Source: Paragordius varius (Eukaryota; Animalia; Nematomorpha). From it: a DNA stretch of 64,000 nucleotides. The position numbers were made by a program, and so were the translations under genes. The notes beneath the pieces were generated by a model. That model made no database searches, was not told the DNA's origin, and saw only the letters and a list, made by a program, of their open reading frames with translations. This document shows positions 1 through 57,774 of the stretch, in pieces. The stretch is taken from contig OZ176052.1 in assembly GCA_964247055.1 (NCBI GenBank), positions 10,416,001-10,480,000 on the forward strand, in the 5' to 3' direction. Each line of letters starts with the position of its first letter. Position 1 is the first letter of the stretch.

Positions 1-361
1 TAGCTGTGTATAGCAATCATATAACATATTTTTCCATTAAAACACATATTTTTGGCTATAATAGATTTTTTACGATATATTTTTTTATTTATTATGTAAA
101 TGGAAAGTTAACCAAAATGACATAATAAAATATTTTGTTTTTTTTTTAATTTAACTCAAAAACAATAAAAACACATTTTAATGTTCTATTTTATAATTTT
201 ATATTATTAAAAATTTAGTCAGACAGCAGTCTAAAGTTTTGTTCTTATCAATTTAATGTTTTAATTATAAAGTTTGAATCCAATTTATCTACTGTTTTTC
301 TTATAATTTTTAATATCGGGATATAAAAACAATCTTTTTTCGGTCAAATCATTGAAACAAT

Positions 362-3300
362 ATGAATCACGTGCTACTTTTAACCATTATTGCTATATGC
401 CATATTCCCTTAATTTCAGCGTTCCCAAGGGTAAAGAAAGCAGATCCCGATCATGCTTTGGCCTGTGACCTTTTTAAAAAAATGTTCTTTCCACCCACGA
501 GTAATGTCGAAGATTACACATCTAATGTGAATTTATTTTTTTCACCTATAAGCATACGTCAGGTTTTGTCGATCCTTATGTTAGGTAGCGATGAAAAAAC
601 CCTTAAACAATTGACTTCATTGCTTTTAAGAAATCTCACTCATCCCGAATTGAAAAGAAGTATATCTCAAAGATTAAAAAGTAGTCTTGCATCACACCCG
701 CCCAGCATTGCAATCGAAAATCAAAATGGGATATTTGTTGATGCAAAAATGTCTCTGAATCCCGACTTTAAAGCCAATGTTCACCGATACTTCCCTGCCA
801 TTGTTCAAAATTTGAATATATCCCAGGATCCAAAGGCAGCCGAAACAAAGATAAATGAGATTGTTTCCAACGCTACTAGAAATAAAATCACCACCATTCT
901 TCCTTCTGGTGTATTGACCCCTGATACGCGTATGGTAGTCACCAATTCCATATATTTCAATGGTATATGGGCCAATCAATTTAATAAAAGGTATTATGGA
1001 TAGCATATTTATACCATATATATGTTGGCAATTATGAAGATTTGTAAAGGGAATAGTTTAAAATATATTTAAATTAACCACACTAATTTAGTCGCGTTTT
1101 AGGGATTCGAAACGGAGATTACCAGTTTTTATATTATCGTCAAAAAATCATAAAAACGCCGTGCCTTTGTAACATTTTATTTTTATACAACGTCACCTGC
1201 TTTTAATTTATAAATGGATCTAACATTATTTTCAAGTTTTTATGTACTCTGATCTTTATTATATTCAAATTATTGGTTTTCATAAAAATAGAGTAGAAAA
1301 TGTTTAGCTAAAACATTAGACAAAATTGTTGGAAAAGGAACATTTGTTAAAACCGTTTTTAAAAATATAAACATATGTTAAAGATTATAAATCATGGCAT
1401 ATAGCCTACGCTCACAACAGGCTTTAGACCTCGCATTAAATGATTATTTCATGTTAATGATAATGTACACTTCGATTTTATATAAAGTCTTAGTTCAAGA
1501 TAATTGTTTAAATATCACCCACGCACTTACTGGTATTCTGGTAATTTTAAAGCCTTTATAATGAACCAAAAAAATTAAATATTATGAGAAAACTAATGAT
1601 AACTACAATATTTTTAATTTAAAAAAGTGTCTAGCTGCGGATATTAAGCCATGTATTATTCCAATATTTTGGTTCAGTTTAGGGGTTCCTATACTTTAAA
1701 AGAGTTAAAAAATATATTTTTAAGATATTACTTTAAATCCATTGTCCCATTAGCACCTTTGAGTGATGCTTGCCTTAAAGGGTGGATTAGTTGATGTTAA
1801 CTTAATCTTAATGGCCAGATACACTATATCTTAGGTAGGATTGGATTAAAAATCTTATAAATTGCAGAGATGTTGCTTAAGAAGATTCATATACATTATA
1901 AGGTAATTTTTTTGTAATTCACAAACTACCTTTATTAACTTTGTGCCATTAGATTTTTAAAAATTATTTTACTAACGAACTTTTTTAACGTTATTTACAA
2001 ATATAATTTAATATATTAACGTAGAATCAATGAAAAGGTTCTCATTATTCATCAGAGAAGCTGAGATAATTAATCTGACCCAACACCAATTGTCTTGATT
2101 TTTCTGAATATAAAATTTCATAAAATTTGTATTTTATGTATATCTATATACATGTTTTATACTCTAGTGAAACCAAAATGGGAACCTTTAACACTGAAAA
2201 AAATGGAAATCAATCAATGTTATTCATGAACAGCCGAAGGCGCATGCCATATGTCCGTGAAGAAATTGATATAAATGGAACACCAAAGGAAATTCAAATT
2301 GGTAAGTTAGATTATGGCAATGGAAAAGTTTCCATGTACATTATAAAACCCGGTGTTAATGCAACACTCTCTCAAATCGTAAATGCTCTAACACCAAATG
2401 TATTGGCTAATAAAGTTTTTCAACTCCCAAACAACCAAGACGTCATTTTATCAATCCCAACTTTTAACATAAGTTATGAAGATAAACTTAAAAACAAGTT
2501 GGAAGCCTTGGGTGTTACTGATTTATTTAGGTAAGTTTAATTGCTTTTAACCCTATTATTATTAAATTAAATGGATATTGTTCTAACAATTTATCGGGTT
2601 TTTTGAATGTTTCGAATTTAAGCAAACCGTAGTTGATACAAACGGATCCCATATGCATGCCAGTGAAGGACAAATTATAAAAACTTAGCTGTTTTTAAAT
2701 ATTCATATGAGGAGAGTATATAGAATATCTGACTTGCGAGCAAAATATTAGTTTAAACAATTCCACAGTCTATTTATATTATTTATATGTAACTATACAC
2801 CCGTATTTATCCTACAGAGTTGAGTTAATCATAATTCATATTAATTATTCAATTTAAAAAATATTTTTTTTACAAGCCAATATTTTAAATTTTGGATGAG
2901 TCATGGATTGTTTATTTTAAATGTATAATTTATGCAATAAGTTTGTAGGTACAGATTTATAAAAGAATCTAATATTTTAATAACAAACGAATATGTCAAT
3001 AATTACCAACTCCAGCCATAACGCGATTAAATCTAAAAAAAAACAAATTCGAAAAATAAAAAAAGTAAAGTATATAACATTTTTTAACTGATTAAAAATT
3101 TTTCTGCATAAGCCACAAATTTATAATTTTATTTAACAAACACCTTTAGTATGCAAGCCGATTTATCTAACATGGTTAAACCAAAAACAGGTGGTCAAGA
3201 ATTGTACGTTGATGAAATATACCACAAAGCCCGACTACAAGTCAATGAGGAAGGCGCCATCGCAAGTGCCGCCTCAGCTGCTGTCATAATGGCTAAATCG

Positions 3301-3408
3301 TTCCCTATCACGCATAAATTTGTGGTGGATAAACCCTTCTTATTTTTGATAGCTGAAAAAACGCACAATGATATCTTGTTTATGGGCTCATTTTCGGGAA
3401 ATTATTAG
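362..3408 (+). CDS. Secreted serpin (serine protease inhibitor), 3 exons: 362-990, 2168-2530, 3150-3408; 416 aa
   Basis: Hydrophobic N-terminus (MNHVLLLTIIAICHIPLISA). Serpin motifs FFSPISI, TRMVVTNSIYFNGIWANQF, DKPFLFLI and hinge EEGAIASAA. Canonical GT-AG junctions (aaag|gtatta, ctctag|t, ttag|gtaagt, ctttag|t), all phase 2, give one open frame of 1251 nt. Confidence 0.95.
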
Positions 3409-10991: not shown

Positions 10992-12474
10992 ATGATTAAT
11001 CGCAAGCTAGCCAATATTAATGTTAATCATCAGCGCATATTTAATAAAATTCATACTAGTAGAATTTTCCACATGGATATGTGTAGAAATAGTATATGGT
11101 AAATTAAATTTTATTTTAAAGGTTACTGACTATATCTTCCTCAATGTTTTCTATTTATGACACATATTCACTAAAAAGTTGTCATACTGTTGCAAACACA
11201 AAAAACGACAGGTGAGGTTATATTTACATGATAGAAAATGTTTATGGTGGCCTCTTGATACCGGTCTTTTTGTGTCCAACAACTCTAATACTTTGCATAT
11301 TTGGGACACTAAAAATTTAAAGATTGTCGAAAAATATGATTTTGATAACATTTATGATATGGATATAGGAAACATCAATACGCTTATTGCTGGTAATATT
11401 TAGTTATTTTATCAAATTTATATTTTAAAATTTTGTGTAATAACATTTTTATTATAGTTTCATGTCCAAACTCTGTTAATTTGGTTGATTTGAGCATTGG
11501 TTCTTCGATGCATACTTTACGGTCCCCGTCATTTATAGGTTTTGGTCTTGTTCATTGGTCTCAGATATCAAGAAATTTACTTTGTTCCACCTCAAAAAAT
11601 AATATATTATTTTGGGATATACGCAATTCTAGTCATCCCTTGATGCAAACAGCTTTAAGTATTTATTTTTTATTCGTAATAAATACTAAAATATAACCCA
11701 AAGTATTTTTGGTATATAACCTTTCACTGATTTCTAAGTTTAATTGCATTTCATCAATGTTGTTTAAAACTCTTCCTTTTAATATTCAATAATATTATAT
11801 TTTAGTTAAAGATGGGCGGTTTAAGTAATGAAAGATTTGTTATAGTTTTACAAAATGAACATCGTTTATTGATGTTTAAGGAGATGTAAAAAAGAGATTT
11901 ACCGATAAATTTTTTTAGGAGTATGTAATGTTTGTTGAATATTTAGATGGAAACGAGGAAATAATAGCCCTAAATAGTAGCACTGATTCACAATTTTATG
12001 GATTTTTAACACAAAACGGTATATTTTATTTATTCGATGTTTTGGCTCATTCCATATTACCTTTGGTAAATTAGAGATTTAATTTCCAAGGATTTAAACA
12101 TTGACTTATTTGAAATGGAATTAAATGCCCTTATACCGACCACAAGCAATGTTCATAGATTGCGAACATTTTCATTTCTCTCTCATAATTATATGGTCAT
12201 TCCTCATTCAAATAAGTTAATTTTAGTGGAATATGATTCGTTCTCAAATAAAAATGGGGATGACAAAACGGTTGATTTTTTGACTGGAAATATTCGAATT
12301 AATGCTAAACCAAAAAGTGGAAAGACCCATTATAAATCAATAAGATTGATTGATTCCATACAAGGTTATCATTTTGGTGATATTACATGCGTCTTAAATA
12401 ATAACGGACAAAACCCTCACATTTTTTATACTGCCTCCGACGATGCTAGCATAATGGAATGGTCAATAATCTAA
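10992..12474 (+). CDS. ERCC8: DNA excision repair protein ERCC-8 / Cockayne syndrome A (WD40). Exons 10992-11098, 11122-11211, 11235-11392, 11458-11658, 11947-12065, 12091-12474; ~352 aa; true start may lie slightly upstream
   Basis: Spliced translation contains KIHTSRIFHMD, WWPLDTGLFVS..TLHIWDT, VNLVDLSIGSSMHTL, VHWS...LLCSTS..ILFWDIR and HFGDITCV...FYTASDDASIMEW, colinear with CSA motifs as I recall them (WYPHDTGMFTSSS.DKTLKVWDT; VQLCDLKSGSCSHIL; LWDVR; GH...VDCC...LYSGSRD.NILAW). All junctions are GT-AG and frame-consistent. Confidence 0.82.
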
Positions 12475-12616
12475 ATGCAAGTAAAATAGTTTTAATATAT
12501 GAATTAGCAATTATTTATTTTAGTTTACAATTTTATATCATTTATTAATAGATATGAGTGAGTTTTGATAATGAATAAATGAAACGTTCCGTTGGAGCAT
12601 AAGTGTTGCTTGTAGA

Positions 12617-15600
12617 TTATGTATTAACTACATGCCGAATCCATCCCTTATGCCTACGAATATTAATGAATAAACTCGATCCCCCGGTTTTACAATTCGT
12701 TTTTGTCCTGTAGAACATTCCTATTAGGTGCTGTTTAACTAAACGAATATGAACATAATTGATTATGATAATAAATTTTTCGATGTTGAGCTAAAAAATT
12801 TATATCATATTGTGTTATCATGACAAATATGGATAGTCGAAGTTTTACATTTGACAATATGATAAATGATATTTAGTGAATCTCCTTTTTTATTTTATGA
12901 TTAATATGTACCTCCGACACGAGCTAACAATGGTGAGCCCAGCTCATTTTCACAGGGAAAACTTTGTAAGTATCTCGAGTCCTCTGGAATACCTTGAGCA
13001 CATATAACTTCTCTTTCTGGGTCATTGTTGTTATCATTAATGTTATCTAATTCAGGGCAATTTGTGGAATTTAACAGCTCAAAAGTTGCAACATGTGGGA
13101 CAGAAGCCATTCGTCCATTATCTGTATAAAATATATTTGTTTTAGTGGTGATTTAAATGTGGAAAAACTTTTTTTATTTTATGAAATACCCGAAATTTGA
13201 ATTGTTTTGTTAAAAAGTTTATTTTATGTATTTCTCTGAGAATCTGATGATATAGGTATGACATATATTTCTTGTATAAATCGATATCCGCCTTAAAATA
13301 TAAATAATAGTCATGGATTGTTTTGATAAAATATTGATTAATAGTAACCGTTATAGGGGTCACAAATAATGTTTGGATATAAATTTAATGTTAATATTAT
13401 TTACTAATATTTCCCCAACTCGCATACAATACAGAAAGGCCTGGAGTTAAAAACACGCCATCATCACCGAAACAAACCGGCTGTACTACCGAAGTGTATT
13501 CCATTTCATTCAAGTTGTAAGGATAAGTATATTGATTATTGAGAGGATGATCAGGTTCTCCTCCAATTTTTAACATTTGCAATTTCATATTATCGTATCT
13601 TGACACTATATTTCATCAAATTATACAATTAAAGGAGATAAATTTTAAAGTTCATTTGATTATATTAAATCAGATGATTATTATAGGACCTAGATCCTAT
13701 AGTTTACATTTTTGTTCGAAAAAATTTATTTTTGGCTCATTATGCTGGTTGCATGAAGCCCAAGACTGCTATTTTTGCGGGAAGGAGTACTAAATTTTAA
13801 AGAATTATAATGATAAAATTAATGCCCTTAATATGCTACACTTCTTTTTAAATTCTGCCTGCGCAACATACAATCGCTTTCAGAGTGAATTCGAACGGTT
13901 GTAAATGAAAATTTTTTTAGCCATTTCTAAAAATAATCAGTCTTTTTTTCAACATGTAAACGGTATAAGCAGTAAGTTCGGTATGTTTTTAACGGTTTGA
14001 AACCACCCCTTTAATTCACTACCGTCGAATTTACAGTTTTTGCCAAATTATCACATTTGATTATTTTATAATTATAATTATCCCAATAGCAGATTAATGT
14101 TTGATATAGTTATTTTATTAGTATATTATTTATTTTAACCTTGTGGATTAGTTACTGCTCTATTAATGGCATATATCCTTTCATCAATATCATAAAAGAA
14201 TGATAAGTAATCTCCCGTTTTGATGTAGTAGTCGCGTAAAGGATATTGCGATGTACAATCAGCCAACGTTAAAATCCACTTTTTGTTAATTATGATTCCG
14301 GTACACACAGGATCTTTCCGATTTTTTAGCATTATTTTCGCAATCCTGTGACACATAATTTAAACATTATTATATGATAATTTAATATATAAATTAGAGA
14401 GATTTTATAATCTAGATGCTACCAACTTATATAATTGTACAAGTATATAATATAGAGTACATGAAATTGGGAATATAAATATACTTATATATATTTATCT
14501 GATAATTAGATGTATATTATAATTGATTTAAAGAGTTTTTACAATTATGCCTATAATTAAAGTAAATTAACCTTTTAATCAAAATTCGGAGGAGTTTTCA
14601 TTATCGAATTATACAAAATAGATTCATTATAGTTTAAAACAGTTTTATACCGTTTCCCTTATGCTTTGAATACTATAAAATTTGCTTCACCAACGTTTTG
14701 CCATAAATTAAATTTTTAAGCAAAATATCCATTTTTTGGAATTTCAAAAATGTCAAAAATTAGGACATATTTAAATTTTTTATTGCGTTATATCGGCATT
14801 TTTGTTTTTAGTTTAAGATAACTAGCCAATTTTCTAGTGGCAAAAATTTGCAATCTTCGGAACTTAAGTCGAATTTGTGTTTAATATTAATATTGTTCTG
14901 CTTTTAATGTAGTTCATGATTTTTGGGAAGGAAAATAGTTTTATCAAAAAAAAATTTTAATTGACAGAATATGCCATATTGTGATTTTCGTTATCGAGCA
15001 ATTGACACAAGATTGCAAATAACATTCTTTTATCATTTGTCAATCCTAAAGACTATGCCTGATATGTTTTTTATCAGAATATATATATTTTATAAGGATG
15101 CTCTCTCTCCCTCAGATTTTGTGCGTAGTTCTATATTTCATACATGGATTTTTTAATGTTCGTTTTACTTTATGTTATAGCCATCCGATAGTCCTGATCA
15201 ACGCATTTTCGTTGTTGCTTTCTGTTATAAGTAGGGTTGTGCATTTGACTGTTTTTTCAAAAAAGTCCGGTCAGACCCAGTCAGATCATGGTCATGACCA
15301 CTTTTTACTTAAGTTAGTATCCGATATTAAATTGTCAAAATAATGTTCGAATTACACTTGCGTTTCACTAATAATGTCATGTTTTTTCTGGAAAGTTTGC
15401 ATACATTTTTTTGATAATTATTATTTACAAATATCTTCAATCGAATTTAATCAAGAAATTGTGTTCAAAAATTTTGCCACATGTTTAGAGCCTTCTGAAT
15501 CTTCAATACGTAGCTTTTAACACTGGATATTTCAAATAAAATTTTACCTAGTATGTTTTACACTTTCTTTCATCATTAAAATATCCAATTATATTATGTT

Positions 15601-18600
15601 TTATTGGTTCATATATATGGAATAATTGCATTTGCAAAGTGCTTGATTGTTTTGTTTTTAGAAATAACTGGATATGCTTAAATGCTTATGTTATAAGGAG
15701 TCATGTTTAAAAAATTTTAATATATTGTTAAATAAGCATATATAAATATTTAATTTTTATTTTGTTAAAAAATTTATTAAAAACCAATAAAATCTTATTA
15801 TCTCTCTTCCAAAAAAAATTTCTAGCATTTTTTCAAAAAACAGGTGTTTGTTTCAATGACCACGGTCAAAAAATAAATAGTCACTGCCCTGGTCATGACC
15901 CGGTCACCGGGTCATGACTTGGTCACAACCCTAGTTATGAGTTTAATCAACTTTTTTTATATCACTTACCTATTCTTTTCTAAAGCTATATAAAAAAATA
16001 CAAAACAAACCCTATTAATCACCTTTTATTAAATTAATTTAGTTATATTGATCTGATAGAATTATAATCTATCATTTATCTTAATATCAGAAAACTGGTA
16101 TAATTTAGCGATAATTTTAAAAATTTGAAAAATTGCGAACGGAAATCAATTATATATTAACATTAAATTAAAAACTAAACCTCGGTTCATTATAAATTTA
16201 AATTAAATAAATTAACAAGAATAAAAAAATTTTTATGCTTCTAAATTGATCCATTAATACAATATTATATACCAGGGTACAGGGTATCTTGTAGCTACTC
16301 CATTTATCAGTCGAGCTTGTTTTATATTAGTTACACCATAATCATAGATGTCGACTGAAGGGGATATACCGCATTCAGGGGTTCCTTTATGCATTTTTAA
16401 ACAAATTTATTTAATAGAGTGAAAATAGTTGTTGTGATAAATTAATTATCTAATCATAACTTTAACTCTAAATTTCCGATTAGAACCAATCGTTAATTTA
16501 TTTACAATTTTAAAATTTAAGTTGATTATAATATTACTAATTGTTGCGAAAAATGATTAATTTCAAGTATAATATAATATTTTAATTATACAATTGGAAA
16601 AACTTGTTTCCACCTGAACTCTCCAGTCATAACTATTTACATAAATTAAATTAATTTATGTGAGTAAAAAATGTTTCCAACAATTAGCTAATTAAAATGT
16701 GTTAATTAATTATTATCTGTCATTTCAAACTATGCTCTCGCTTACATGGCAATATCCAATATTATTTTGGATTTTAAAAGCCCTTAAGCATTCATAAATT
16801 CAATCGTAAAGCGCAATGGATTCTGTCAAACAGTATATACAATAAAAATCTTTTATTTTGGAAACGAAAAATCCAAATTTTAGGACTTAGTATTTGTCTT
16901 AATAATAACATAATACTGCTAATCACAATATTATGTAGTATTATTTTTAAAATTAATCGATCGTTTATTTAAACATTCGCTAAAAACACAATGGAAATCG
17001 GAAACATTAGCGGTATTTATATTTTAGTTAATACTCAATAAATTTATAAAATGTTTGTTTTTTGACTTGCAATATCTCAAGATTAATTACAATGTTTTTT
17101 TATTTATTAATAAAGAATAATGTGTTTTTTAGGAGTGCGAGTGGATATTATAATTAAATAAAAATTTCCGATATACTTAACCCTTAATTCGCCGCGTTTC
17201 ATTATTTTTTAAAATTATCGATGGTTTATGAGTAAATTAATGGTCAAAAATTACATTGAAATATTTTTCGCAGCCTATGTGATCACACGATTCGAATATT
17301 TCATTGTTCCAAAGTTTATTAACCTTTTTCGACAAAAACATGTAAAAAATATTTTTGAATTTGTTTTACGTATAACCACCGCATTTTAAATTAGTAATTT
17401 TGATCTAGGCTCCATTAAAATAATGGTTTATTTTATTTTTACCACACATTAAAATATCTTAGCATTGTATTTCAAATTTGTAACATATTTAAAAAGGTTA
17501 TATTGATGCTTTTTAGCTTTTTTAGATAAATTTTCTTCAATAAAAAACAATAAATACAAACTGGAATCACAATATCTTCCATAAAACCCTGATCGGCATT
17601 GGCAATATCCATAACTGTCACAATTTCCTGTGGATTGGGTGTTATTACGACACGGACAATCTGATAAATTATTTAGTATAAGTATGTTAAATTATATGCT
17701 CTAAATGAGTTTGCCACAACAATATTTAGAATCCGAGATGAGGGCAATTACAATAACACCAAACTAATTTTTTGAAAAAATTCCATATTTGATATAAGTG
17801 TGCATGTTGGCCGAATGTCAGGGCTAATTGCTATATGGGGTAGAAAAATATCCAAAAAGGTAAATATTTTAAAACGCACATAGAGGGTATGTAACACATA
17901 AATAATTTATATATTTTGATATTAACGAAACTCACAAATTACATATAATAAATTAAAGAAAGATAAAATATGAAACATTCTTAAATACAAAAATATCAGG
18001 GCTTCAAGCTGGTTCGAAAAAAAGGAAACCAGAACGGGTTTGGTTACTAGACGATTAAAACCAAACCGATCTGGGATTGAACTCAGCAAGTGGAACCGGA
18101 ATCGGGTTGGCTTCTTTACAAGCTACGTTTGGGAACGGTTTTATTTTGGTTCATGACTTAACATTAAAAGATTTTGATAAAACATTTTATTATTAATCAA
18201 ACCAAAATACAACGTAAATTAAAACATATTATATCAGAAGTAGGTAATAAGTATATTTGTATAACTATCGCATATATGGAGCTTTAAAAATGATTTTACG
18301 AATAATTAGGTCGTCCGACTTCTTCTCAAATCTGAAATATAAAATTCAGCGAGGGAAAGTGGTTTTCTAAGTGTAGAGCTGTAATATATACCGCTAATGT
18401 AACATTACATGACAAATCTAATATTTTTAGATGTGTGGCCAAAAGAATTTTGGTGGCTAATGCAGCTTGTGGGCTGCGGATTACCACTAATATATAAAGT
18501 GACTCATTTTTTTCCGTTATGGATAATTTATTATGGACGCTATAGTTTATGGTATTGTGAGATTTTTAAGGTAGGTATTCTTTATCTATAGACATTGTGT

Positions 18601-37320: not shown

Positions 37321-37579
37321 ATGAAGCGATTTGTTTTATGGGTAGCATTTACCTTGATTTTGTATATATCTCCAGCTTTTTCATTCATAAATTTGAACGA
37401 TCTTGGAGGTAAAAATTGAAATTTAATTTTGGTCAATTTAGATGTCAATTGCAGTCATGCGATTAAAAAACACTGCCAAAGTTTACATAAAAGTCTACCT
37501 GGACAACTCCCAATCAGTTTTAAAGTCTACATTGAAAAATTGGGTAAATTGGCATAACCCCTAATTTTTGCTACATTGT

Positions 37580-37614
<35 letters not shown>

Positions 37615-39404
37615 GAAAATCATGATCCAATAACTAATAATCGATATCTCTCCAATGTTAAAGCTGTGTACGATTCCTGCATGGCTTATCAGAAAAGTCC
37701 CCAAAGTAATAATAATACATTAGCCATCGATGAGATTAGAACATTGCTCAATAGGTATGGTAGCTTAAGTCAAATCGCTTATGCAAAAACATCGATAAAT
37801 GATACCGAAAATAATGATGCAATTTTAGAAATCTTGAGTGATAATTTTTCGTTACTCCCAATGAGTTTTGATTATACAGTCCAACAATATAATCACTCGA
37901 ACAAAACAATACCCAAACTGGTTGTAAACAAGGTGAATATGGATTATTCTGAGCTAATAACGGACCAAGAGGTGTTGGAGGTAGAAATTAAGATGCTAAA
38001 GTCATTTTATTTCTCATTGGGGGGCATTGAAGAAAATTGGCAGGCATTAAATGATACGTTTAGAAATCTAATTTCACTCGTAAGAGCTATGGTATGTCTT
38101 TATTACATAAATTTTTACCGTTTTTTAACAATTGAATAAATAATTTAGTTTTTGCAGATGATGGGAATTAGTTTACATCTAACATTGGGAATTTTTATTA
38201 GTTATATTGTACGCATCTTATTGATTTTTATTAAAATCCCATTAAAAGGGTTTAGACGAGGAGCCAAATGAATTGTCTGGATCTTCATCAGGATTTTCAA
38301 CAATATCGGGATCAGGCCATTCTCATTTCCCTAATCTTGAAGATAGCTCGGGTTCTACCACAGGATCAGTTAGCGGCTTAGGATCAGGCGTATAATAATA
38401 TATTATGAGAATTATTTTGTAGTTTTACAGTACCACTTGCTTAAAAAAGAAATTATTGTGTGGTCTTACATGTTTAGAGAATTTAGATTCAAAATTTACC
38501 ATTTGTATTTAAGACAATAAAAAATACATAGAAACAATGAATTTTTTATGATTTTTCCAATCGTGTTATTGTATAGTAAATAAAAATATAATACTGTTTG
38601 AATCTGGCGGAATAGCATAAATATTAATCTTGGATTTACATTATTGTTGGGCTATCTTTTATTAACGTATAATATAAATTAAACGTCCATAATTAAATGA
38701 AATTATTTGTTGTAAGATAAGAAAAAAATAATTACAATCATTTGTTCTTTTTTACGCATACCAACAATAATGTGAATCGACCAACATTAATGTGCCTACT
38801 CTATTATAAAAATCTTTGATATTAATTTTATTAATAAATTATCAGTATTTCCTATCTCAGGCTTTTAAATTAAATACTTATGAAATACAAATGATATATT
38901 GCATATTTTAAAATTTATCTCTATAATCTAAAATTAATACATCGTCAAAAAATAATATTTTATGTTACAATTTTAAGGTTAGCAAACAGAACACAATTAT
39001 ATCCTACAACTGCAAAAATATTGATAGCAAAATTGATTGGGTAATAAATTTTATGTTAATCAATTATCTAGGAACTGAAGAGTATCAGTGATTTCAATGA
39101 GATATATGAGGTAAAAAATTATTTAATATTCTTTTATTAATAATGGATAGAAAATAGCGTTTGCTGTTATGAGAAAGCGCTGGGATAAATACGAGATCCT
39201 GTGCCAAGATACGATATTATTTGATGACCTGAAACCCAAATTTACTAAAATGTATGGCTCATTTGTCGGAGCCTTGTTCAAGGAAAACAGAACGTAAGTT
39301 GAATGTAAAAATGACGTGTCAAAATAATTGTCTTAAGGAAATATCGATAAATTTATATTATTGTAAATCTTTAAACTTGTACTAATAACAAAACTTTTAC
39401 CGAT

Positions 39405-39445
<41 letters not shown>

Positions 39446-42400
39446 CAAAATGTAATTAATAGATTGTTAAAAGATTTTCTAATCCTACGAGTGGCAAATG
39501 CGTTGGCCCCATACACTGTCCCAGATTACAGAGATCATCAGGCCGGGTTAAACGAAATCCAAAAATATTTTAACTCCTCCAACCTGGCAGCCAGGTGTGT
39601 AAATATGATAATTTCAGAGCAAGTGGATTTATCAAAATACTCAATTTATTTGAGTCTACAAAATACTTCCGTTTCTACAGTAAAATATTGACACCTTTTC
39701 TTATACTATTTAGTGGTGTAATGCGATTTTACATTCAATATTTATATTCTATACAGTTGAGAAATATAGTGAATGAGTATGTGAACAAAAGTGATTTGTA
39801 CAACCACAATGACACAGATTATTTAGTAATTTTTTAATAGCTATTTTGTAGGAATTCCTCAAAGAAACTGTACCAAACATGTATGTTCATTATCATAATT
39901 CGATTGAAATGGTACGTATTTTATATTACTATAACTCAAATTGAATTATTGGCTGTTTCGTTTACTATTAGTAATAAAGGTTACATTTATTTGAATAAAC
40001 TATTTCAAATTTGCCAAACATAGATATATTGTCCATTTAATTGTATCATATAAAACAAATACTAAAACCGTAATCTTTTCTCTTTCAATATATTTATTAT
40101 ATGAGTTGGTACCCACAATTATAATATTTGTTATGAATAAGATTAATCCAATGCCAACAGGCGAATTCTTTCTTTCTAACATGTATGATCTCAAGGAGTC
40201 CACACACTTTCTCAATACTGCCTCATCTCTGTAAGTTTCAAATCGTTTTCACAATTAAGTATTTACTACTTTTCTAAATTGCTTAATTTTGGATAAGGGG
40301 CAAACTGGCCAATTTTGAATGAATAATTTATAATAAATATTATATTAATACTGAAACTTCAAAAGGCCTAAAAAAATATGGTTATGCTCGCTCTCTATGC
40401 ATTTCATCCATACGTGGTGCAAGGAAAAATAAGTTTTGAAATAATTGAGTTTTTCTGTTTATAGAACTAAATATAACATTTTTACAGTCTTACAGTAAGT
40501 CCAGTTAAATTCTTCGCAAATAGCTCATTAATTAAATTTCTGCGACTGCACTAAAATATCGTAGACCGCATAAATTTTTTAGCCTCCCGAGCTAATTTCA
40601 TATCCACTCACATTTCATTCTTTCGAAATAAGATTTGTCATATAATTATATTTTTTATAAGACAATAGCGTTATTAAAGTAAGAAAATCTAAACAAAAGA
40701 ATTGATGGAGTAAATAACGACGAGGGTTTGTAATGTAAACTATGTGGAAATTGTCGTAAATTTTCGCCATAGAAAAGTATATATGCAAAAATTGAATTTT
40801 TATAGAATTATATGTACCATTTTCACTTCAAGTTGGTCCTACACTTCATGGTCCCCCACACTTTAACCTTCAATATCCTTATTTTAAGTTTAGATCTCAC
40901 CATAAATTCATGTTTTATTTAATTACTTTTTAACCTGATTTTCTTTATTTATTATATATTTTTCATTTAAAAATAAAATTTTATATTCAAAATCGCTTTT
41001 TTGTTCCAAACTATTTCTAATTTAATAAAATTAATACCATGTAAATGTTTTTACTGATAAATTGTAATTATTAACCCAGAAAATTTATATATATTATTTA
41101 AAAACATGTTAAAATGTTATAAATATATAAAATAAATTTTAGGAAATTAAAGATATACGGTTTCTTAATTATTAAAATTAATATTGATTTAAAGTTTTTG
41201 TTAAATAAAGAAAATTTGTTAAAAATGATAAAATAGATGAATTATACACGATTCGATTGATAAAAGTTAAAAACAAAACAAAGTTAAAGGACCAACTTGA
41301 TTCAAGTATTCAGGGACCAACTTGAAATGCACAAGGACCAGCATGAAGTTTTTAAGGACCAACTTAAAGATTCAAGGACACTCTTGAATTGCAAATGGTA
41401 TATATATATATATATATATATACTTAACTGTTCTCCTGATGATGCCTATGCGAAAATTTGAGAACAATAAATTATATTTTATTCTTATTCTATGACGATT
41501 CCCACATTGAAAGTGAATATCTGGCATATAAAATAAAGCCAAAGATTGTATGCATTACCTTAGGTTTGTTTAAACTTCCTTATATACATTAGTATGGTAT
41601 AAAATAAATAATATACCTATATAGAATGCATGCCAAAATTTTAAAAGAATTGTTGAACCTGGTGATCTTATTTTGTATTATATTTTTTAACACATTCGAA
41701 AAATAAAGACGCTTTTTAAAAAATTGTCCAAAACCCAATTTTTAAAAAGGCCATTTAATATTTTCCATCTGACATATGTATAAATTGGTAGGTACTCAGA
41801 ATATTGCTCTAAACATTTTATACGTCTTGACAATTAAAAATTCTGGGTATTATTTTTCTGGCAACCATTTTTTACCCTAAATAAAATTATAACATCCTTT
41901 GAAATATATTAAATTTATATGAATTATTATATACATATAGTTGGGTGCAATTGGATCTTAAGCCTGAGGCCACTTTTATGTATGATTACCATAAAATTAC
42001 ATATAAATATATTTGATAAATGTATACTGATGTATTTCTTATTACACAGCAATTATTTCAGACTTGGATACCAACTCCTACCTTATTATAGTATCTAACC
42101 TAAATATTCTTAATTTAAATCATCATATTTTTATTTATTATTATGCAACTTATATAGTAAAATGCAATGAAGATTTTATGGAATTAAATCTTTTGCAAAG
42201 GGCCATAAAATTTGCAACGGTATGAATGACTATTACCAAAAAACTTTTTAATTAAAATACCAAATATATTATTATCTGAATTAAAAGTAGATTGCTTCTT
42301 CTAATCAGAGTCAACCAGCTGATATGACCGAATCGCAATTTGAATTAATTCTGGAAGTATCTGATTTTTGTTAAAAGTGTTTGTCTTTTATTTTATTAAA

Positions 42401-45293: not shown

Positions 45294-47420
45294 CAGTGAT
45301 ACTCAAACCGCGGCCCGCGGGCCGCATGCGGCCCTAAGAGTGCTTTAAAATTGCCCTATGACCATAATGATAGATATTTTTTTTATTGATGAATTTTTAA
45401 AATACACATAAACGAATTTTCGCTTATTTTAATATCAATTTATTTTCTTTACATCTATTTCGTAATTTCTATTTTTTACCCAATTCGGTAGAAAAATTTC
45501 CCTAAAAATGATTTCCAAATTTTGAAACACGTTGTCTCTGTTTCTGTATTCTATTTTCTATTTTGAAATTTTTATTGAATTCCTTTTTTGTATTTCAGCA
45601 AGCTTTTCACCCAAACTTGCATATACATATTTTTTCCATAGCGATCCTAAATTATTTTTTATAACTCCCATAAAATATTTTTCAAATCAACATCATTAAA
45701 TTTTTACCTATTTTTTATAGCATAATTCAAATTATATTCCTATTTTTTGCAAAAATTTACATAATATTTATAAATTTAAAGGATGACATCTAATGCTAAA
45801 AAACGTATACTGATAAAAATCGCTCTTTAAAAAGGAATGGGAAGAAAAATTCTTTGTCGTTTTTAAAAATGTTGATACTTGCCTTATATGCAAGATCAAC
45901 ATAATTATTGAAAAATACAATATTGAAAGACATTTTACAATCTATCATTCTCATAAATTACCAAAAAATCACGAGGAAAGAATAATTAATAAATTAAGGA
46001 ATTATCAGAAAGAAAATCTATTATTTTTATAGCTTTCTCCCAGGAAAAGCTGTAACATTAGCTTCGTATGAAATTTGTTATATTTTAGGAAAAATATGAA
46101 ACCGTTTACTGATTCCCAACTAAGAAAAGAATGTCTAATAAGTGATAGCTCTTTTTTCGATAATAATGGTATATTTATCAAAAAAATTGGTTTCGATCTG
46201 CACAAATGGCTGTCCCTTTATGAAACGAAGGATTTATTCCTCTTTTGAAAAACAAAAATAATTTGAAAAATATTTACTCAACAGCAAAACTTGGTTTCCT
46301 GTGTAAAAGATGAATCACTCAATTCAGTAATTAAAACGGTTGTGGATATAGTTAACCTACGAGAGAATTTAGCAGCCGTAAATTCTAAACCCTCTGAAAG
46401 ATATCCACAGTGAGTTTAATAATATTCTTTTGTACACCGCTGTGAGATGGCTAAGCCTTAGCAAAGTATTAAATAGATTTTTTGTTTTAAGAAATGAGAT
46501 TGTATTATTTATAAAAGACAACAGAAAGTTTGACAAGGAAATTAATAGTGACCAATGGTGGGTTTTTTTGCCTACCTTTGCGACATTTACTTATAGACTT
46601 AGTCTTAATACAAGTTTCCAAGGGAGCAAAATATTAACCCAATTTGCTAATCAAATATTTGCTTTTGAAGAAAAATAAATAATATATAAACAAGAATTTA
46701 TAAATAAAACACTCCTATATTTTCCAACATTTAAAATAGACAATCATTTTGCATTTTTATATAATGAAATGAAATTTAATTTGAAGAACTAAAAAATATT
46801 AAAAATTGCTTAAAACTCGTGGAAAATCCATGGTATGGATATATTTAATATTAAGCAATTTGAGCATCTCGGTTTTGATCAGGCGCTTATCATTGAAGAA
46901 TTCGTAGATTTTAAAAATGATTCCAATTCGGAGGCTATATATAAGGAGAATCGAAGAGAAGAAAGATATGTATGGTTTTGGCAAGATGTGCCAAATAAAT
47001 ATGAAAATATAAAAAAAATGTGCTCAAGTTATCCTAACTGTTTTTTCTCAAGTTACCCGTGGACAGCATATTCAAAAATAAGGTATCTCAAGAATAGATA
47101 CAGAAATCGCTTAACCGATAATCATATAGACGACGTATTAAGATTGGTCTGTCATGAGGCGAAACCAAATTTGTCAAAAATTATTGGTTAATATCAAAAT
47201 AAATGTTGTTATCAAAATATTTATTTTTTTAAACTAAATGGTGCAAAACGAGTTTTTAGTTGGATTTACATGCGGGCATAAAATTAATTGTGCTGATTTA
47301 AAGTATAAATATGTGCATATGTGTCAAATAGCTGTGGAAATTTGCTATTATAAGATTCTGGCCCTCGAAAAAAATATATATTTTATTTGGCCCGTCAAAT
47401 TTTTTTCGTGAGTACCACTG
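45294..47420 (+). mobile_element. Decayed autonomous-type hAT transposon (GTF2IRD2/Charlie/Buster-like), 2127 bp
   Basis: TIRs cagtgatactca / gtgagtaccactg and perfect 8-bp TSD ctctaatc. Broken transposase pieces: KKEWEEKFF..TCLICK...KYNIERHF (BED-type), YTAVRWLSLSKVLNRFFVLRNEI, and KNRYRNRLTDNHIDDVLRL. Confidence 0.92.
45785..47191 (+). pseudogene. hAT transposase pseudogene (frameshifts, stops, internal deletions)
   Basis: Motifs listed above lie in different frames; ORF-track pieces 46430-46678 and 46835-47191. Confidence 0.88.
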
Positions 47421-49375: not shown

Positions 49376-51960
49376 AAGAGAACCGGACCGGCTTCCGCCG
49401 AATTCTCTCGGGGTAACGACGCTCGTGCGGATTTACATTGATATTGTCATTATTGTTATTACTGTTATCATTACTACTTTCATTATTATTATCATTTATT
49501 TTATCATTATTACTACTATTGTTATTATTATCAATACTACTACCATTATTATTATTGTTATTGTCTTTATTACTATCATTACTATTGTTTGGAGTAACCG
49601 GTGCGGGTGAGTTGGCCGGTAGGTCTACGTGTTTCAACTGATCTGCATGCTTTCTGACAATCTTCTGGTTTACCTGATCCCACACACTGTACGAAAGGAG
49701 ACCCGTTCTATCAACAACATCGCCGGCTCGCCATCCAAAATTTTGTTCGTTTCTCATCATTACGGGTTGGTTTATTGAGAATTCACGGCGTGGACGGGGT
49801 GCGTCTAAGATTGTTGCTTTTGTGTTGATCCAGGTGAGGGGTGTTTGAGATACTCGTTTGAAGAGTAGTTGAAACGGGGTTTCTTTTGTAGTCGCATGTA
49901 TTGAATTACGATACGACCATAGAGTGGTATTGAAGGCTTCTTGTGGTGAAATATTATCATTTTTGATTTTTCTATACTTGCCCTTGAGGGTCCCAACTAA
50001 CCTTTCTACCATCCCATTACTTTAAGGATGATAGGGGGTTACTCTCACGTGTTTAATACCCAAGTTTGTTAAAGTGGATGTGAAGTACGAATTACTAAAA
50101 TAAGAAGCATTATCACTAATTACCGTCCTCGGAAACCCAAACCTGGCAAAGGTTTCCTCGAGTTTATGCAATATGTTTACCGAATTAACCCGTTTTAACA
50201 TGAACCCTTCCGACCATTTTGATGAGCTATCAATCAATAACAACCAATAATACCCGTCAACTGGTCCCGCTATATCGATGTGTAACCGCTCCCATATCGC
50301 AGCATTTGGATCCCATTGATAAGTCGGATTTTCACCTAGGCTTGGCTTGTTTACTTGACATGAACTACACTCACTGTATCTTCTTACCAAATCGTTCTCT
50401 AATTTTGGCCAAAAACAGGTAAACCTTGCCATTGCTTTCATTGTTTCTACATTATTATGCCCGCTGTGTAAGTAATTGACCACATTTGCCTGTAAGCTTT
50501 CTGGGATGATAATACGATCGTTTAAACTGAGCAATCCGTATTGGTACGAAATCTCTCCCTTCCGATTCGTAAACCCAGCCAACTCAACATCACTCCAATC
50601 TTGGTTATGAATCGCCTTAATTACTTTCTGCAAAATTTTATCCTTAACCGTTTCTCTCCGAATTTCATCGCGACTTAACTGAACGTTATGACAATTTAGG
50701 AACCTGAGATGTCTAGTTACCATGTAATCTCTATCGATTGTGTCAACATTATTATCACCGGGACATCTTGACAAGTAATCGGCTCTATTTTTCGGACCCG
50801 CCTGATAACTTAGTTCAAAATCATAATCATTCAAACGGTTAACCCATCTTAAAACTTTCGCATTTTGAATTTCTTTCAAATTTCTATCCCTATTTATTAA
50901 CCTAACAAGTGGTAAGTGGTCTGTCAAAATTTCAAACTTTCTACCATAAATGAAGTTGTGGAACTTTTCTAATGCAAAAACAATAGCCTTTAATTCCTTT
51001 TCTATCGTGGAGTAGTTTAATTCTGCGGTACTACATTTTCTTGAACCATAGGCAATAGGTTTCCTTTCACCATTTACAACATGACTTAGAATACATCCAA
51101 ACCCTATATCTGAGGCATCGGTTTCAATTACTAACTTTCTATCCGGATTGTATGGTGTTAAAAATACTTGTTCACTTAATAATTCCTTAGCGGCTTTCCA
51201 ACAATTCTCATGTTTTTCCGACCAGTTCCATCTGACGTTCTTACTTGTTAAACTATGTAAATCACTTACAATCAATTGAAGCTTGGGTATAAATCTTTCA
51301 TGGAATGTTAAAAATCCTAGAAAACTTCTTAAAGATTTTTTATCCACAGGTTTTTTAAAATCATTGATTGCTTTTACTTTATTCTTGCAAGGACTTATAC
51401 CTTTATTACTTATTTCAAATCCCAGATAACTTACTGAAGGTTCACCAATTTTTATTTTATCTTTTCTTAATCTAAAACCTGCTAATTCTAACCGATTTAA
51501 AACATTATTAAGATTTATTAAATGTTCCTGTTCAGATTTGCCAGTTACTAAAACATCATCTAAATATGCACAAGTGCCGGGACAATCTTTTATAACCTGG
51601 TCCATGACTCGTTGGAAAATTATTGGTCCTGTTGACAGTCCGAAAGGCATCCTTTTGTAGCGAAAAAATCCTTTGTGAGTCGCAATTGTCAAGAGATCTT
51701 GTGATTCTTTGGTTATGGGCATTTGTAGATAGGCATCTTTCAAGTCAATCTTAGTGAAAACTTGGCCTTCGCCAATCTTACTCACTAAATCATCAAACGT
51801 TGGAATGATATGAGAGTCCTCAGTGAGCCACTTGTTGATGGTAACTCTAAAATCGCTGCAAATTCTTACCTCTCCATTCGCTTTGAGCACATTAACGGTG
51901 GGCGTGGCCCATGTCAGAGGTGTAAGGTTGGGATCTATAGGCTCCAGAATTCTAACTTTT
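49374..51960 (-). pseudogene. pol (RT-RNaseH-integrase) with in-frame TAA at 50022-50024
   Basis: PYHP*SNGMVERLV is in frame; the motif PYHPQSNG implies a CAA-to-TAA change. WATP..V.K.NG.VRIC, PFGL, YLDDV, HIDIAGP and ISDNA are present. Confidence 0.92.
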
Positions 51961-53140
51961 GTAATCTTAGTAATTCATTTTCAGCTTTTGCTCTTAGGGG
52001 AAACGGTACTCGGCGGCAAGGCCAAACTTTGGGGGAGGCATTGGGTGCTATATGAATTGTAACTGGCTCAATGTAACAACCTAATTCTTCTTTAAATAGA
52101 TTAGGGAAATTTTCAATAATTTTATCAAGTTCAAGAAAGTTAATTCGTACTTTAGAAATGTCGATGTTAAATCTCGTGATCCAATCCAAGCCACAAATGA
52201 GCGGTGCCTTTGACATTTTTTCTTTCAATACGCAACATTGTGCGTTCCCCAAGTTTTGCCCATTGATTTGCACTGTGACTGTTGTTACGCCCAGTAGAGG
52301 TACTATGCTATTATTGTAGGCTTTTACTGGCTTTATGGGTCTAATATTTGGCTTGCCAACTTGTTTCCAGATGTCAAAGCTGATAACACTGATGTCAGCT
52401 CCAGTATCATAGATAAACGTTTGTTCTGTCTTATTTATCATTATTTTTACGGTCCATGGTGAGGCTGGCATTGCTTTTCTATGGATCTGGCGGTTGAACA
52501 AATTTTTGGCAGTGTTTTTTGATCTACACATTTTTGCGAAGTGATGAGGTTTTCCGCATTTATTGCAATTGCGGTTCCAGGCAGGACATTTGTTTGGTCC
52601 ATGGCTATTACCACAACGATTGCACGAATGTGTTAGGGGTTTTGCTGTTGGCTGTCGTGAACGCATGGCCTTGTTATTATTATTGGTGTGTTGTAATCGA
52701 TTTAAATTATTACCATTGTTATAATTGGTATTATCATTATTGTTATGAAGGCCAGCCCTGGCAACCTCGTGTGCTAGTGCGAGATCCACTATCGTTTCTA
52801 GAGGCACGGGTTGTCCGTTGATCTCGGCATCGGGATACCTTGAATGTATGTCAATTTCCAATTGTGGTTGCCGTAACCCAATGACGAAGGCATCCCGAAT
52901 CCGTTCCTCTATTGAATCCTTAAATTTTGCCTCTTCGGCTGCGATCTTTACCCGTTCTAGAAATTGGGTAAACGATTTGGTGTTGTTCCGCACAAGTCGA
53001 AAAAACTCAAATCTGCTTTGGAATTTTGACTTTGTGGGATTGAATACCTTTAAACCCGTTGCCATTATCTCGGTCCATTCTGCATCTTTTATCTTTTTCG
53101 GATAGAGTCGTTGGTTGATTTGCGTCCCACCATTAGACCT
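51935..53140 (-). pseudogene. gag-protease, N-terminally truncated, 1-bp deletion near 51952 shifts frame from pol
   Basis: RDAFVIGL, CNRCGNSHGPNKC..CNKCGKPHHFAKMC and YDTGADISVI are present. Adding one G restores KLGILEPID. The frame stays open upstream of the ATG at 53065 to ~53140. Confidence 0.88.
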
Positions 53141-56745: not shown

Positions 56746-57774
56746 TTATAGCCAATGTCTTTTACAGACTTTTTGACATTCAGCTTTGGTTGAAAATCTA
56801 TTTGAGTTTCCTTGGCAGCCTCCGTATATGAATGAGATGCATTTCCCAGCTTTGTGATTATAGTACCATTTGGGAATAGCCGCTCTACAGGGTCCCACTT
56901 CTTTAGGTAGTTTACATATCTTGTTTAAACTTTCAGTCAAACAAACGGCTAATGATATAATGTAATTAAAATTATGCAATAAATATTTTAACTACATTCG
57001 CGTGAATATTTTTAAACTAATTTAAGTTAAATTCCTACTTATAACTGTAGAAATGAATATACTTCAATAAAAAATTATACAGTTTTAAGTAGGGTGTCCA
57101 ACAAAAATGGCTTTGCGGGTTGCATCGAAAAAAATAAAACAATGGCCATCAATAAATATTTTGTCATGCGTCCGTAAAAAACGAACACAATATATACTAA
57201 AATTTGGTTTAATCCGTTGGCAAACGGAAAGATATATTTAGATTTGCCTATTTTCTATGTTTATTTTCAATATTAAGCTCTGATTCTAAATATTTTATAT
57301 TTTTCGTCCATAAAAATTTTGGTTGAATGATAACATGCCTTAAAGTACTAATAGTACTTTACGAAATCCAATTTAAGTGTAGTATGTGGTATATTAATTA
57401 AAAGCCTTAAATTAACCCTTTACAGAACAATTAATGGAGTTTATTAAACGAAGATATAATTCTAAATAAATAAAAAATTTGGTTTTCCAATTTTTAGCGG
57501 GCTTTACAAATTCTTAACCCCCGCTTGTTGTCCACCTCTGGTTTAAAGTCTAAAATCTCTTTTACTTTTTTATAAAAAACTATTAATTTGTATTTAAAAC
57601 CCTAAGACAAGGGGCGGATAGTAACGATAGATAAATTTGCAGTTTTTATATTTGAATTTTGGCACATTACATATATATAATCACTTTTTGAACAGAATTT
57701 ATATATTTAATGGAAAAATATTGATAAATGTTACCTGCTACCAAAATTAAAGATACAACATAAAATATATTCAT
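56746..57774 (-). CDS. Secreted single-domain BPTI/Kunitz protease inhibitor; exons 57774-57735 and 56948-56746; 80 aa
   Basis: Signal exon MNIFYVVSLILVA with phase-1 donor (gcag|gtaac) joins acceptor cattag|cc. Domain CKLPKEVGPCRAAIPKWYYNHKAGKCISFIYGGCQGNSNRFSTKAECQKVC has all six Cys plus YGGC and N.F motifs. Confidence 0.93.
57090..57540. mobile_element. hAT (Buster-like) MITE in the Kunitz intron (451 bp)
   Basis: Ends tagggtgtccaac / gttgtccacctctg. TSD gttttaag / gtttaaag (7/8). Confidence 0.7.

Follow-up and report, generated by a model that had tools for sequence, protein, structure and literature searches.

A predicted non-catalytic trypsin-like domain at the end of a putative EGF-module protein in the horsehair worm Paragordius varius

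We have analysed a 64,000 bp stretch of the Paragordius varius genome (GenBank assembly GCA_964247055.1, contig OZ176052.1, forward-strand positions 10,416,001 to 10,480,000), referred to here as the window, which carries on its minus strand five exons, E1 to E5, coding for what reads as a very divergent trypsin-like (S1) domain with replaced catalytic residues. The window has a GC content of 27.8%, contains 0 N and shows a eukaryotic gene structure. An earlier note on this DNA had placed such a domain at positions 12617-16384, and these limits proved exact, 16384 being the first base of E1 and 12617 the last base of the TAA stop codon; every string quoted in that note was found on the minus strand, at the positions given in Table 1. 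The splice frames, which the note had described as intact, are indeed so across the five exons: read on the minus strand, each of the introns between E1 and E5 opens with GT and closes with AG, the phases match, and the codons split by the introns are coherent (TG/G for Trp, G/TG for Val, A/AT for Asn and G/TT for Val). A tiny in-frame intron that would excise the 21-residue insertion of E3 was considered and rejected, as no usable GT..AG pair could be found by eye and the pair that was traced would shift the frame. There are no other copies of E1-E5 in the window, where a tblastn search with the five exons returned only the exons themselves.

Table 1. Exons and motifs of the pseudoprotease gene, listed 5' to 3' within each group. 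A slash marks an exon border or the bond at the activation-like site.
Feature	Position in window	Strand	Content	Basis or borders
Candidate first exon	24510-24453	-	ATG and hydrophobic, signal-peptide-like 19 residues; phase-1 donor	putative, read from the sequence only
EGF-like exon 1	24111-24022	-		splice and phase scan
EGF-like exon 2	23923-23822	-		splice and phase scan
EGF-like exon 3	22937-22839	-		splice and phase scan
EGF-like exon 4	22396-22298	-		splice and phase scan
EGF-like exon 5	20988-20890	-		splice and phase scan
EGF-like exon 6	20617-20516	-		splice and phase scan
EGF-like exon 7	20420-20331	-		splice and phase scan
EGF-like exon 8	17660-17562	-		splice and phase scan
Exon E1	16384-16273	-	linker with unpaired Cys (PECG) and activation-like site QAR/LING, to Pro-Trp motif	acceptor ataaag/GA, donor CCCTG/gtatat; starts in phase 1
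Exon E2	14345-14140	-	N-terminal barrel, His-loop WILTLADC, Cys42-Cys58 pair	
Exon E3	13605-13405	-	KLQMLKI strand, 21-residue insertion (13502-13564), VQPVC (Cys122), SWG	
Exon E4	13121-12912	-	Cys168-Cys182 loop with Asn/Asp-rich insertion, then CENELGSP	
Exon E5	12738-12617	-	C-terminal strands, Cys220, GWI motif	TAA stop at 12617-12619
PECG (linker Cys)	16368-16379	-		motif reading
QAR/LING (activation-like site)	16299-16319	-		motif reading
TLADC	14255-14269	-		motif reading
KLQMLKI	13565-13585	-		motif reading
VQPVC	13472-13486	-		motif reading
CENELGSP	12931-12954	-		motif reading
AATAAA polyadenylation-like signal	12541-12546	-	about 70 nt past the stop	

Assignment to the S1 (chymotrypsin) fold was made at the sequence level, each exon being compared separately. 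Against the Pfam Trypsin model (PF00089), E2 alone scored 23.1 bits, above the cut-off of 20.6, at profile positions 17-57, while the other four of the five exons (E1, E3, E4 and E5) gave no Pfam match. When searched against the PDB, E2 aligned with factor IXa (the top match, E=0.008, with TLADC laid on TAAHC), with the HGF beta chain (E ~0.03) and with kallikreins, and E3 aligned by phmmer with matriptase and enteropeptidase around Cys122 and the GWG region; PDB searches with E4 alone or E5 alone gave no match. We then used an S1 profile of our own, built from 41 canonical domains cut from the proteins that an exhaustive profile search with E2 had returned. On this profile E2 maps to nodes 16-80 (37.6 bits), E3 to 99-132 (8.6 bits), E4 to 145-172 and E5 to 197-231, so that the four exons are collinear and do not overlap; residue-shuffled controls equalled the real score in 0, 0, 6 and 13 of 1000 trials for E2, E3, E4 and E5, respectively. 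An hhalign comparison with a 27-domain alignment of active S1 domains placed E3 at profile positions 100-133 (E=1e-5, probability 82%) and gave a weak match for E4 (E=0.043) in which CENELGSP lies on CQGDSGGP. Among the 30 nearest named Atlas clusters in a protein language model, 29 for E4 and 28 for E5 were Trypsin clusters, E5 reaching an Atlas cosine of 0.95 with 186 shared features. Direct reading of the sequence shows eight cysteines, six of which suit the pairs 42-58, 168-182 and 191-220 while the other two pair a linker Cys with Cys122; both partners of the 136-201 pair are absent. Taken together, the Pfam, PDB, profile, hhalign and language-model results identify E2-E5 as successive parts of a single, highly divergent S1 domain, and the trypsin fold proposed in the earlier note is upheld at the sequence level, with E2 above the Pfam cut-off and E3-E5 collinear with it on the S1 profile.

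The residues expected at the catalytic positions are replaced throughout. Three independent alignments agree that His57 is Asp in TLADC, and in CENELGSP Ser195 is Leu, Gly193 is Asn and Asp194 is Glu, the weak hhalign match being anchored here by Cys191, Gly196 and Pro198. The substitutions that had been noted earlier at positions 57, 193 and 195 therefore stand; that of Asp194, the residue with which the N-terminus freed by activation would pair, goes beyond them. The position of Asp102 depends on the register. The favoured one lays KLQMLKI on the DIALLKL columns and gives Lys, with a sliding profile score of 4.2 bits as against -1.9; it also agrees with the canonical distance from the HP-like motif that closes E2, and the 21-residue insertion then follows the strand. 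The phmmer alignment to matriptase instead places YNLN there and gives Asn, which is the weaker, minority reading. Asp is found at this position in neither register, so that the loss of Asp102 holds, and its replacement by Lys, as first proposed, is the favoured reading. None of the alignments made restores His, Asp and Ser to the catalytic positions. By eye, position 189 is Phe, Ser214-Trp215-Gly216 has become Tyr-Arg-Thr and Gly226 is Ser, which suggests a substrate site remodelled well beyond the triad.

An active S1 serine peptidase has the triad His57/Asp102/Ser195 and the oxyanion-hole Gly193, and the present domain has none of these; what its sequence describes is a serine protease homologue (SPH), a term for S1 domains in which one or more residues of the triad have been replaced and whose gene is intact. 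Because the triad, Gly193 and, by eye, the substrate site are all replaced, the domain as read from its sequence cannot work as a serine peptidase. We regard it as extremely improbable that it is still enzymatic through other residues or another chemistry: some SPHs have been reported to bind substrates and to hydrolyse them slowly (PMC11172050), but here nucleophile, general base, Asp and oxyanion-hole Gly have all been exchanged, and in the vicinity of the site no other Ser/His pair stands out. As a matter of speculation, a salt bridge between Asp57 and Lys102 might take the place of the His-Asp contact.

The site Arg/Leu-Ile-Asn-Gly stands where zymogens are cut, with a basic residue ahead of a hydrophobic one as at the typical Ile16-Val-Gly-Gly N-terminus, and the linker Cys and Cys122 have both been kept. 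In HGF, haptoglobin and many insect SPHs the two chains produced by cleavage are joined by a disulfide. Position 194, invariably Asp in the 27 aligned active domains, is Glu here, and for this reason it is uncertain whether a classical conformational activation would follow. The suggestion in the earlier note that the protein may be cleaved into two disulfide-linked chains thus retains its motif-level basis in the Arg/LING site and the Cys pair, and is weakened by Glu194.

E1 is preceded on the minus strand by eight further exons, 90-102 nt long and of symmetric phase 1-1, each of which codes for one EGF- or laminin-EGF-like module of the pattern C-x-C ... C ... G-x-C-x-C ... G-x-x-C. There are six cysteines in seven of the eight modules and four in the first. 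Two of the four modules scanned reach the cut-off of 21 for Pfam EGF_laminin (PF00053), with 25.8 and 21.2 bits; these matches cover only profile positions 1-33 of 49, and a canonical laminin-EGF module has eight cysteines as compared to the six seen here. Neither E1 nor any of the four scanned modules gave a CLIP match with Pfam, and the upstream exons give only EGF-like modules, with no PAN or kringle domain. The last EGF-like exon ends at 17562 in phase 1 with an A, which together with the GA that opens E1, also in phase 1, makes an Arg codon. The pseudoprotease is most likely the C-terminal domain of an EGF-repeat protein of about 580 residues, with the predicted order signal-like peptide, eight EGF-like modules, linker and pseudoprotease, and such a protein would be secreted. 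The domain had previously been treated as a unit; it is most probably the C-terminal part of the longer protein. The S1-like and EGF-like exons could instead be two separate genes, with the protease-like domain made alone, given that no read or contig bridges 17562 to 16384 and that an in-frame ATG is present just upstream of E1 (16394-16392). A start at this ATG, however, would yield an eight-Cys protein without a signal peptide, and E1 has a good phase-1 acceptor that is an exact fit to the donor closing the last EGF exon, likewise in phase 1, the join creating the Arg codon; we therefore consider two genes unlikely.

The coding sequence has the appearance of a maintained gene. The 282 codons of E1-E5 are free of stops, whereas the two alternative frames contain 21 and 34 of them, and at the stop frequency of 0.085 per codon seen in the introns the chance of such an open frame is P ~1.5e-11; in a genome of 28% GC this argues that we are not dealing with an old pseudogene. 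GC by codon position is 0.44/0.38/0.31 compared to 0.25 in the introns. All 14 predicted exons are open and all of their splice sites canonical. The domain has diverged so far from active trypsins that it is most simply read as having been non-catalytic for a long time while its frame was preserved. Five sequencing runs (X1-X5) contain the locus including its introns and are for this reason DNA runs. Contigs from X5, which represents a second DNA sample, cover the locus at an even, low, single-copy depth; with respect to the window they show a single SNP (single nucleotide polymorphism) in the S1 exons, which is non-synonymous (12731, Gln to His), and 0 indels, while the introns show many of both. 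These differences are too few for a selection test.

We give little credence to the explanation that the gene is an unexpressed pseudogene, copied from an EGF-pseudoprotease paralogue too recently to have gathered stops. It would agree with the absence of the gene from three small runs guessed to be RNA and with the non-synonymous character of the one S1-exon difference to the second sample; yet the exons are without indels in that sample where the introns have many, the full Cys complement is retained, and not one of the 14 exons is closed or flanked by a non-canonical splice site. The view that this is a maintained pseudoenzyme gene and not a pseudogene is accordingly supported from within the sequence, by the open frame, the splice sites, the Cys set and the coding-type GC, with selection inferred.

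Relatives of the protein were sought in several ways. A word-index protein search with E2 gave no candidate, and the exhaustive profile search with E2 returned 41 proteins, all generic and with several ordinary trypsin domains, at identities of at most about 49% over short stretches. Six of these proteins were traced to their source: four come from arthropods, one comes from a fish and one is an ENA entry without a name. This mainly arthropod set is in keeping with an ecdysozoan, and none of the nine scanned with Pfam contained EGF domains. No close relative of the domain arrangement was found among 1.84 billion representative proteins. It should be noted that no nematomorph protein surfaced in any of the searches, and the missing relatives therefore say little about orthologues in related worms. 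In the literature searched, we found no paper pairing laminin-EGF modules with a serine protease homologue and none on nematomorph proteases.

Among known systems, the beta chain of HGF and of macrophage-stimulating protein is an inactive C-terminal S1 domain of a mosaic protein that is cut at Arg/Val-Val-Asn-Gly into two disulfide-linked chains. The predicted horsehair-worm protein resembles HGF in ending a mosaic with an inactive S1 domain, and E2 matched the HGF beta chain in the PDB; on the other hand HGF, a member of a vertebrate family to which we claim no membership here, has PAN and kringle domains instead of EGF modules and keeps Asp102 and Asp194. In vertebrates, protein Z, an inactive S1 homologue, serves a serpin as its cofactor and shares with factors IX and X the architecture Gla-EGF-EGF-S1. 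This resembles our arrangement in that EGF modules precede an S1 domain, and factor IXa heads the PDB matches of E2, but no Gla domain is present here, eight truncated laminin-type modules stand in place of two classical EGFs, and the likeness is one of S1 domains in general, not of orthology. A different kind of likeness is offered by KAF2904463.1 (P0027) of the beetle Ignelater luminosus, a protein named hypothetical with two tandem S1 pseudoprotease domains, both of which read TLCDC and lack a GDSGG motif. It has the same change of His57 to Asp, but its Asp102 is still in place (DLALL), EGF modules are absent from it and the overall similarity is low; the change common to both is probably convergent.

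The arthropod SPHs provide a further comparison. In Tenebrio molitor, Ser195 is Leu in 10 and Asp102 is replaced in 13 of 125 SPHs (PMC11172050). The domain described here agrees with the arthropod proteins in its S1 fold, its replaced triad residues and a putative zymogen-like cleavage site, which SPHs often keep, secretion being predicted in our case; it differs from them in having no clip domain, in its eight EGF/laminin-EGF-like modules, in the additional loss of Asp102, which is uncommon there, and in being far more divergent. The venom protein Vn50 of Cotesia rubecula is an SPH of an insect endoparasite and blocks host prophenoloxidase activation and melanisation (PMC4553444). As a non-catalytic S1-like protein of an insect parasite it is a possible model for the horsehair-worm SPH, with the difference that Vn50 carries a clip domain and that its function has been tested, while the horsehair-worm protein is predicted from its gene sequence. 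Since it has neither clip nor kringle nor Gla domains, the predicted protein belongs to none of the clip-SPH, HGF and protein Z families. What is new is the domain arrangement; the class of non-catalytic serine protease homologues is known.

The reading we favour, and hold to be quite probable, is that of a non-catalytic S1 homologue at the C-terminus of a secreted EGF-module protein of about 580 residues, the fold serving as a binding module. A trypsin-like enzyme would cut after the Arg of QAR/LING, the EGF chain and the protease-like chain would stay joined through the bond between the linker Cys and Cys122, as they do in HGF, haptoglobin and insect SPHs, and the product might take part in a network of extracellular proteases, be it as ligand, as cofactor or as decoy. 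Several observations weigh against this reading. Taken singly, E4 and E5 match the S1 profile only weakly; the join between EGF array and S1 domain is one of phase compatibility alone; Glu in place of Asp194 casts doubt on classical activation; the gene is not contained in the three small runs that were taken, as a guess, for RNA, so that no splice junction has been seen; and the protein searches found no orthologue or paralogue.

The loss of the triad is in itself unsurprising, because dead S1 proteases are well known and abundant and are common in invertebrates. Less ordinary are the completeness of the remodelling, which takes in the triad, the oxyanion hole and, by eye, the S1 pocket while a disulfide scaffold and a cleavage-type site have been kept, and the fusion to a long truncated laminin-EGF array. 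Horsehair worms inhabit the haemocoel of insects and escape melanisation there, and an expanded family of such proteins, if there is one, would therefore be a concrete candidate for studies of host interaction. A much bolder proposal would have it belong to a lineage-specific, expanded horsehair-worm family combining a truncated laminin-EGF array with a triad-less S1 domain, matured by cleavage and acting in the host haemolymph as mimics or decoys of SPH cofactors or of protease/serpin partners that control melanisation and Toll signalling. Although we think this improbable, it would, if true, amount to a parasite effector family analogous to the wasp venom protein Vn50.

Several secreted protease-related genes are found in the window, including a serpin gene and a Kunitz exon in addition to the pseudoprotease. 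The serpin gene has three exons at 356-3405 (+), with Pfam Serpin matches of 1e-37, 5e-15 and 4e-21; about 9 kb separate its end from the pseudoprotease gene. Its reactive-centre loop, read by eye as EEGAIASAASAAVIMAK/S, has an inhibitory-type hinge and a Lys at P1, and on this reading the serpin would be a likely inhibitor of trypsin-like enzymes. A complete Kunitz/BPTI domain is encoded by a single exon at 56749-56991 (-; Pfam 1e-22), about 32 kb from the start of the pseudoprotease gene and 44 kb from the S1 domain. At 11161-12471 (+) lies a gene, WD-repeat-like by eye, whose last exon gave no Pfam match; it is convergent with the pseudoprotease gene, the stop of which lies about 145 nt from its end, and a short 3' intergenic stretch is common to both.

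The intron between E1 and E2 contains an element of about 700 bp (15232-15933) resembling a miniature inverted-repeat transposable element (MITE). Its ends form the inverted repeats TAGGGTTGTG / CACAACCCTA, and GGTCATGACC palindromes occur in its interior. At this element the depth of the contigs rises to about 1200, compared to about 6-10 in its flanks, and it is thus a high-copy repeat. Further away, long open exons at 37558-39688 (+) gave no Pfam match at E<=0.01. Open segments at 45817-47188 (+) resemble by eye a decayed hAT-type transposase with a zinc-finger-like start and a dimerisation-like end; the sole segment scanned, 46814-47188, had no Pfam match at E<=0.01. Finally, a Ty3/gypsy-type long terminal repeat (LTR) retrotransposon occupies 49377-53140 (-). 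Its gag and pol reading frames are long and open (401, 650 and 215 residues), it matches reverse transcriptase, RNase H and integrase, and its GC content of 0.33-0.37 is above that of its surroundings.

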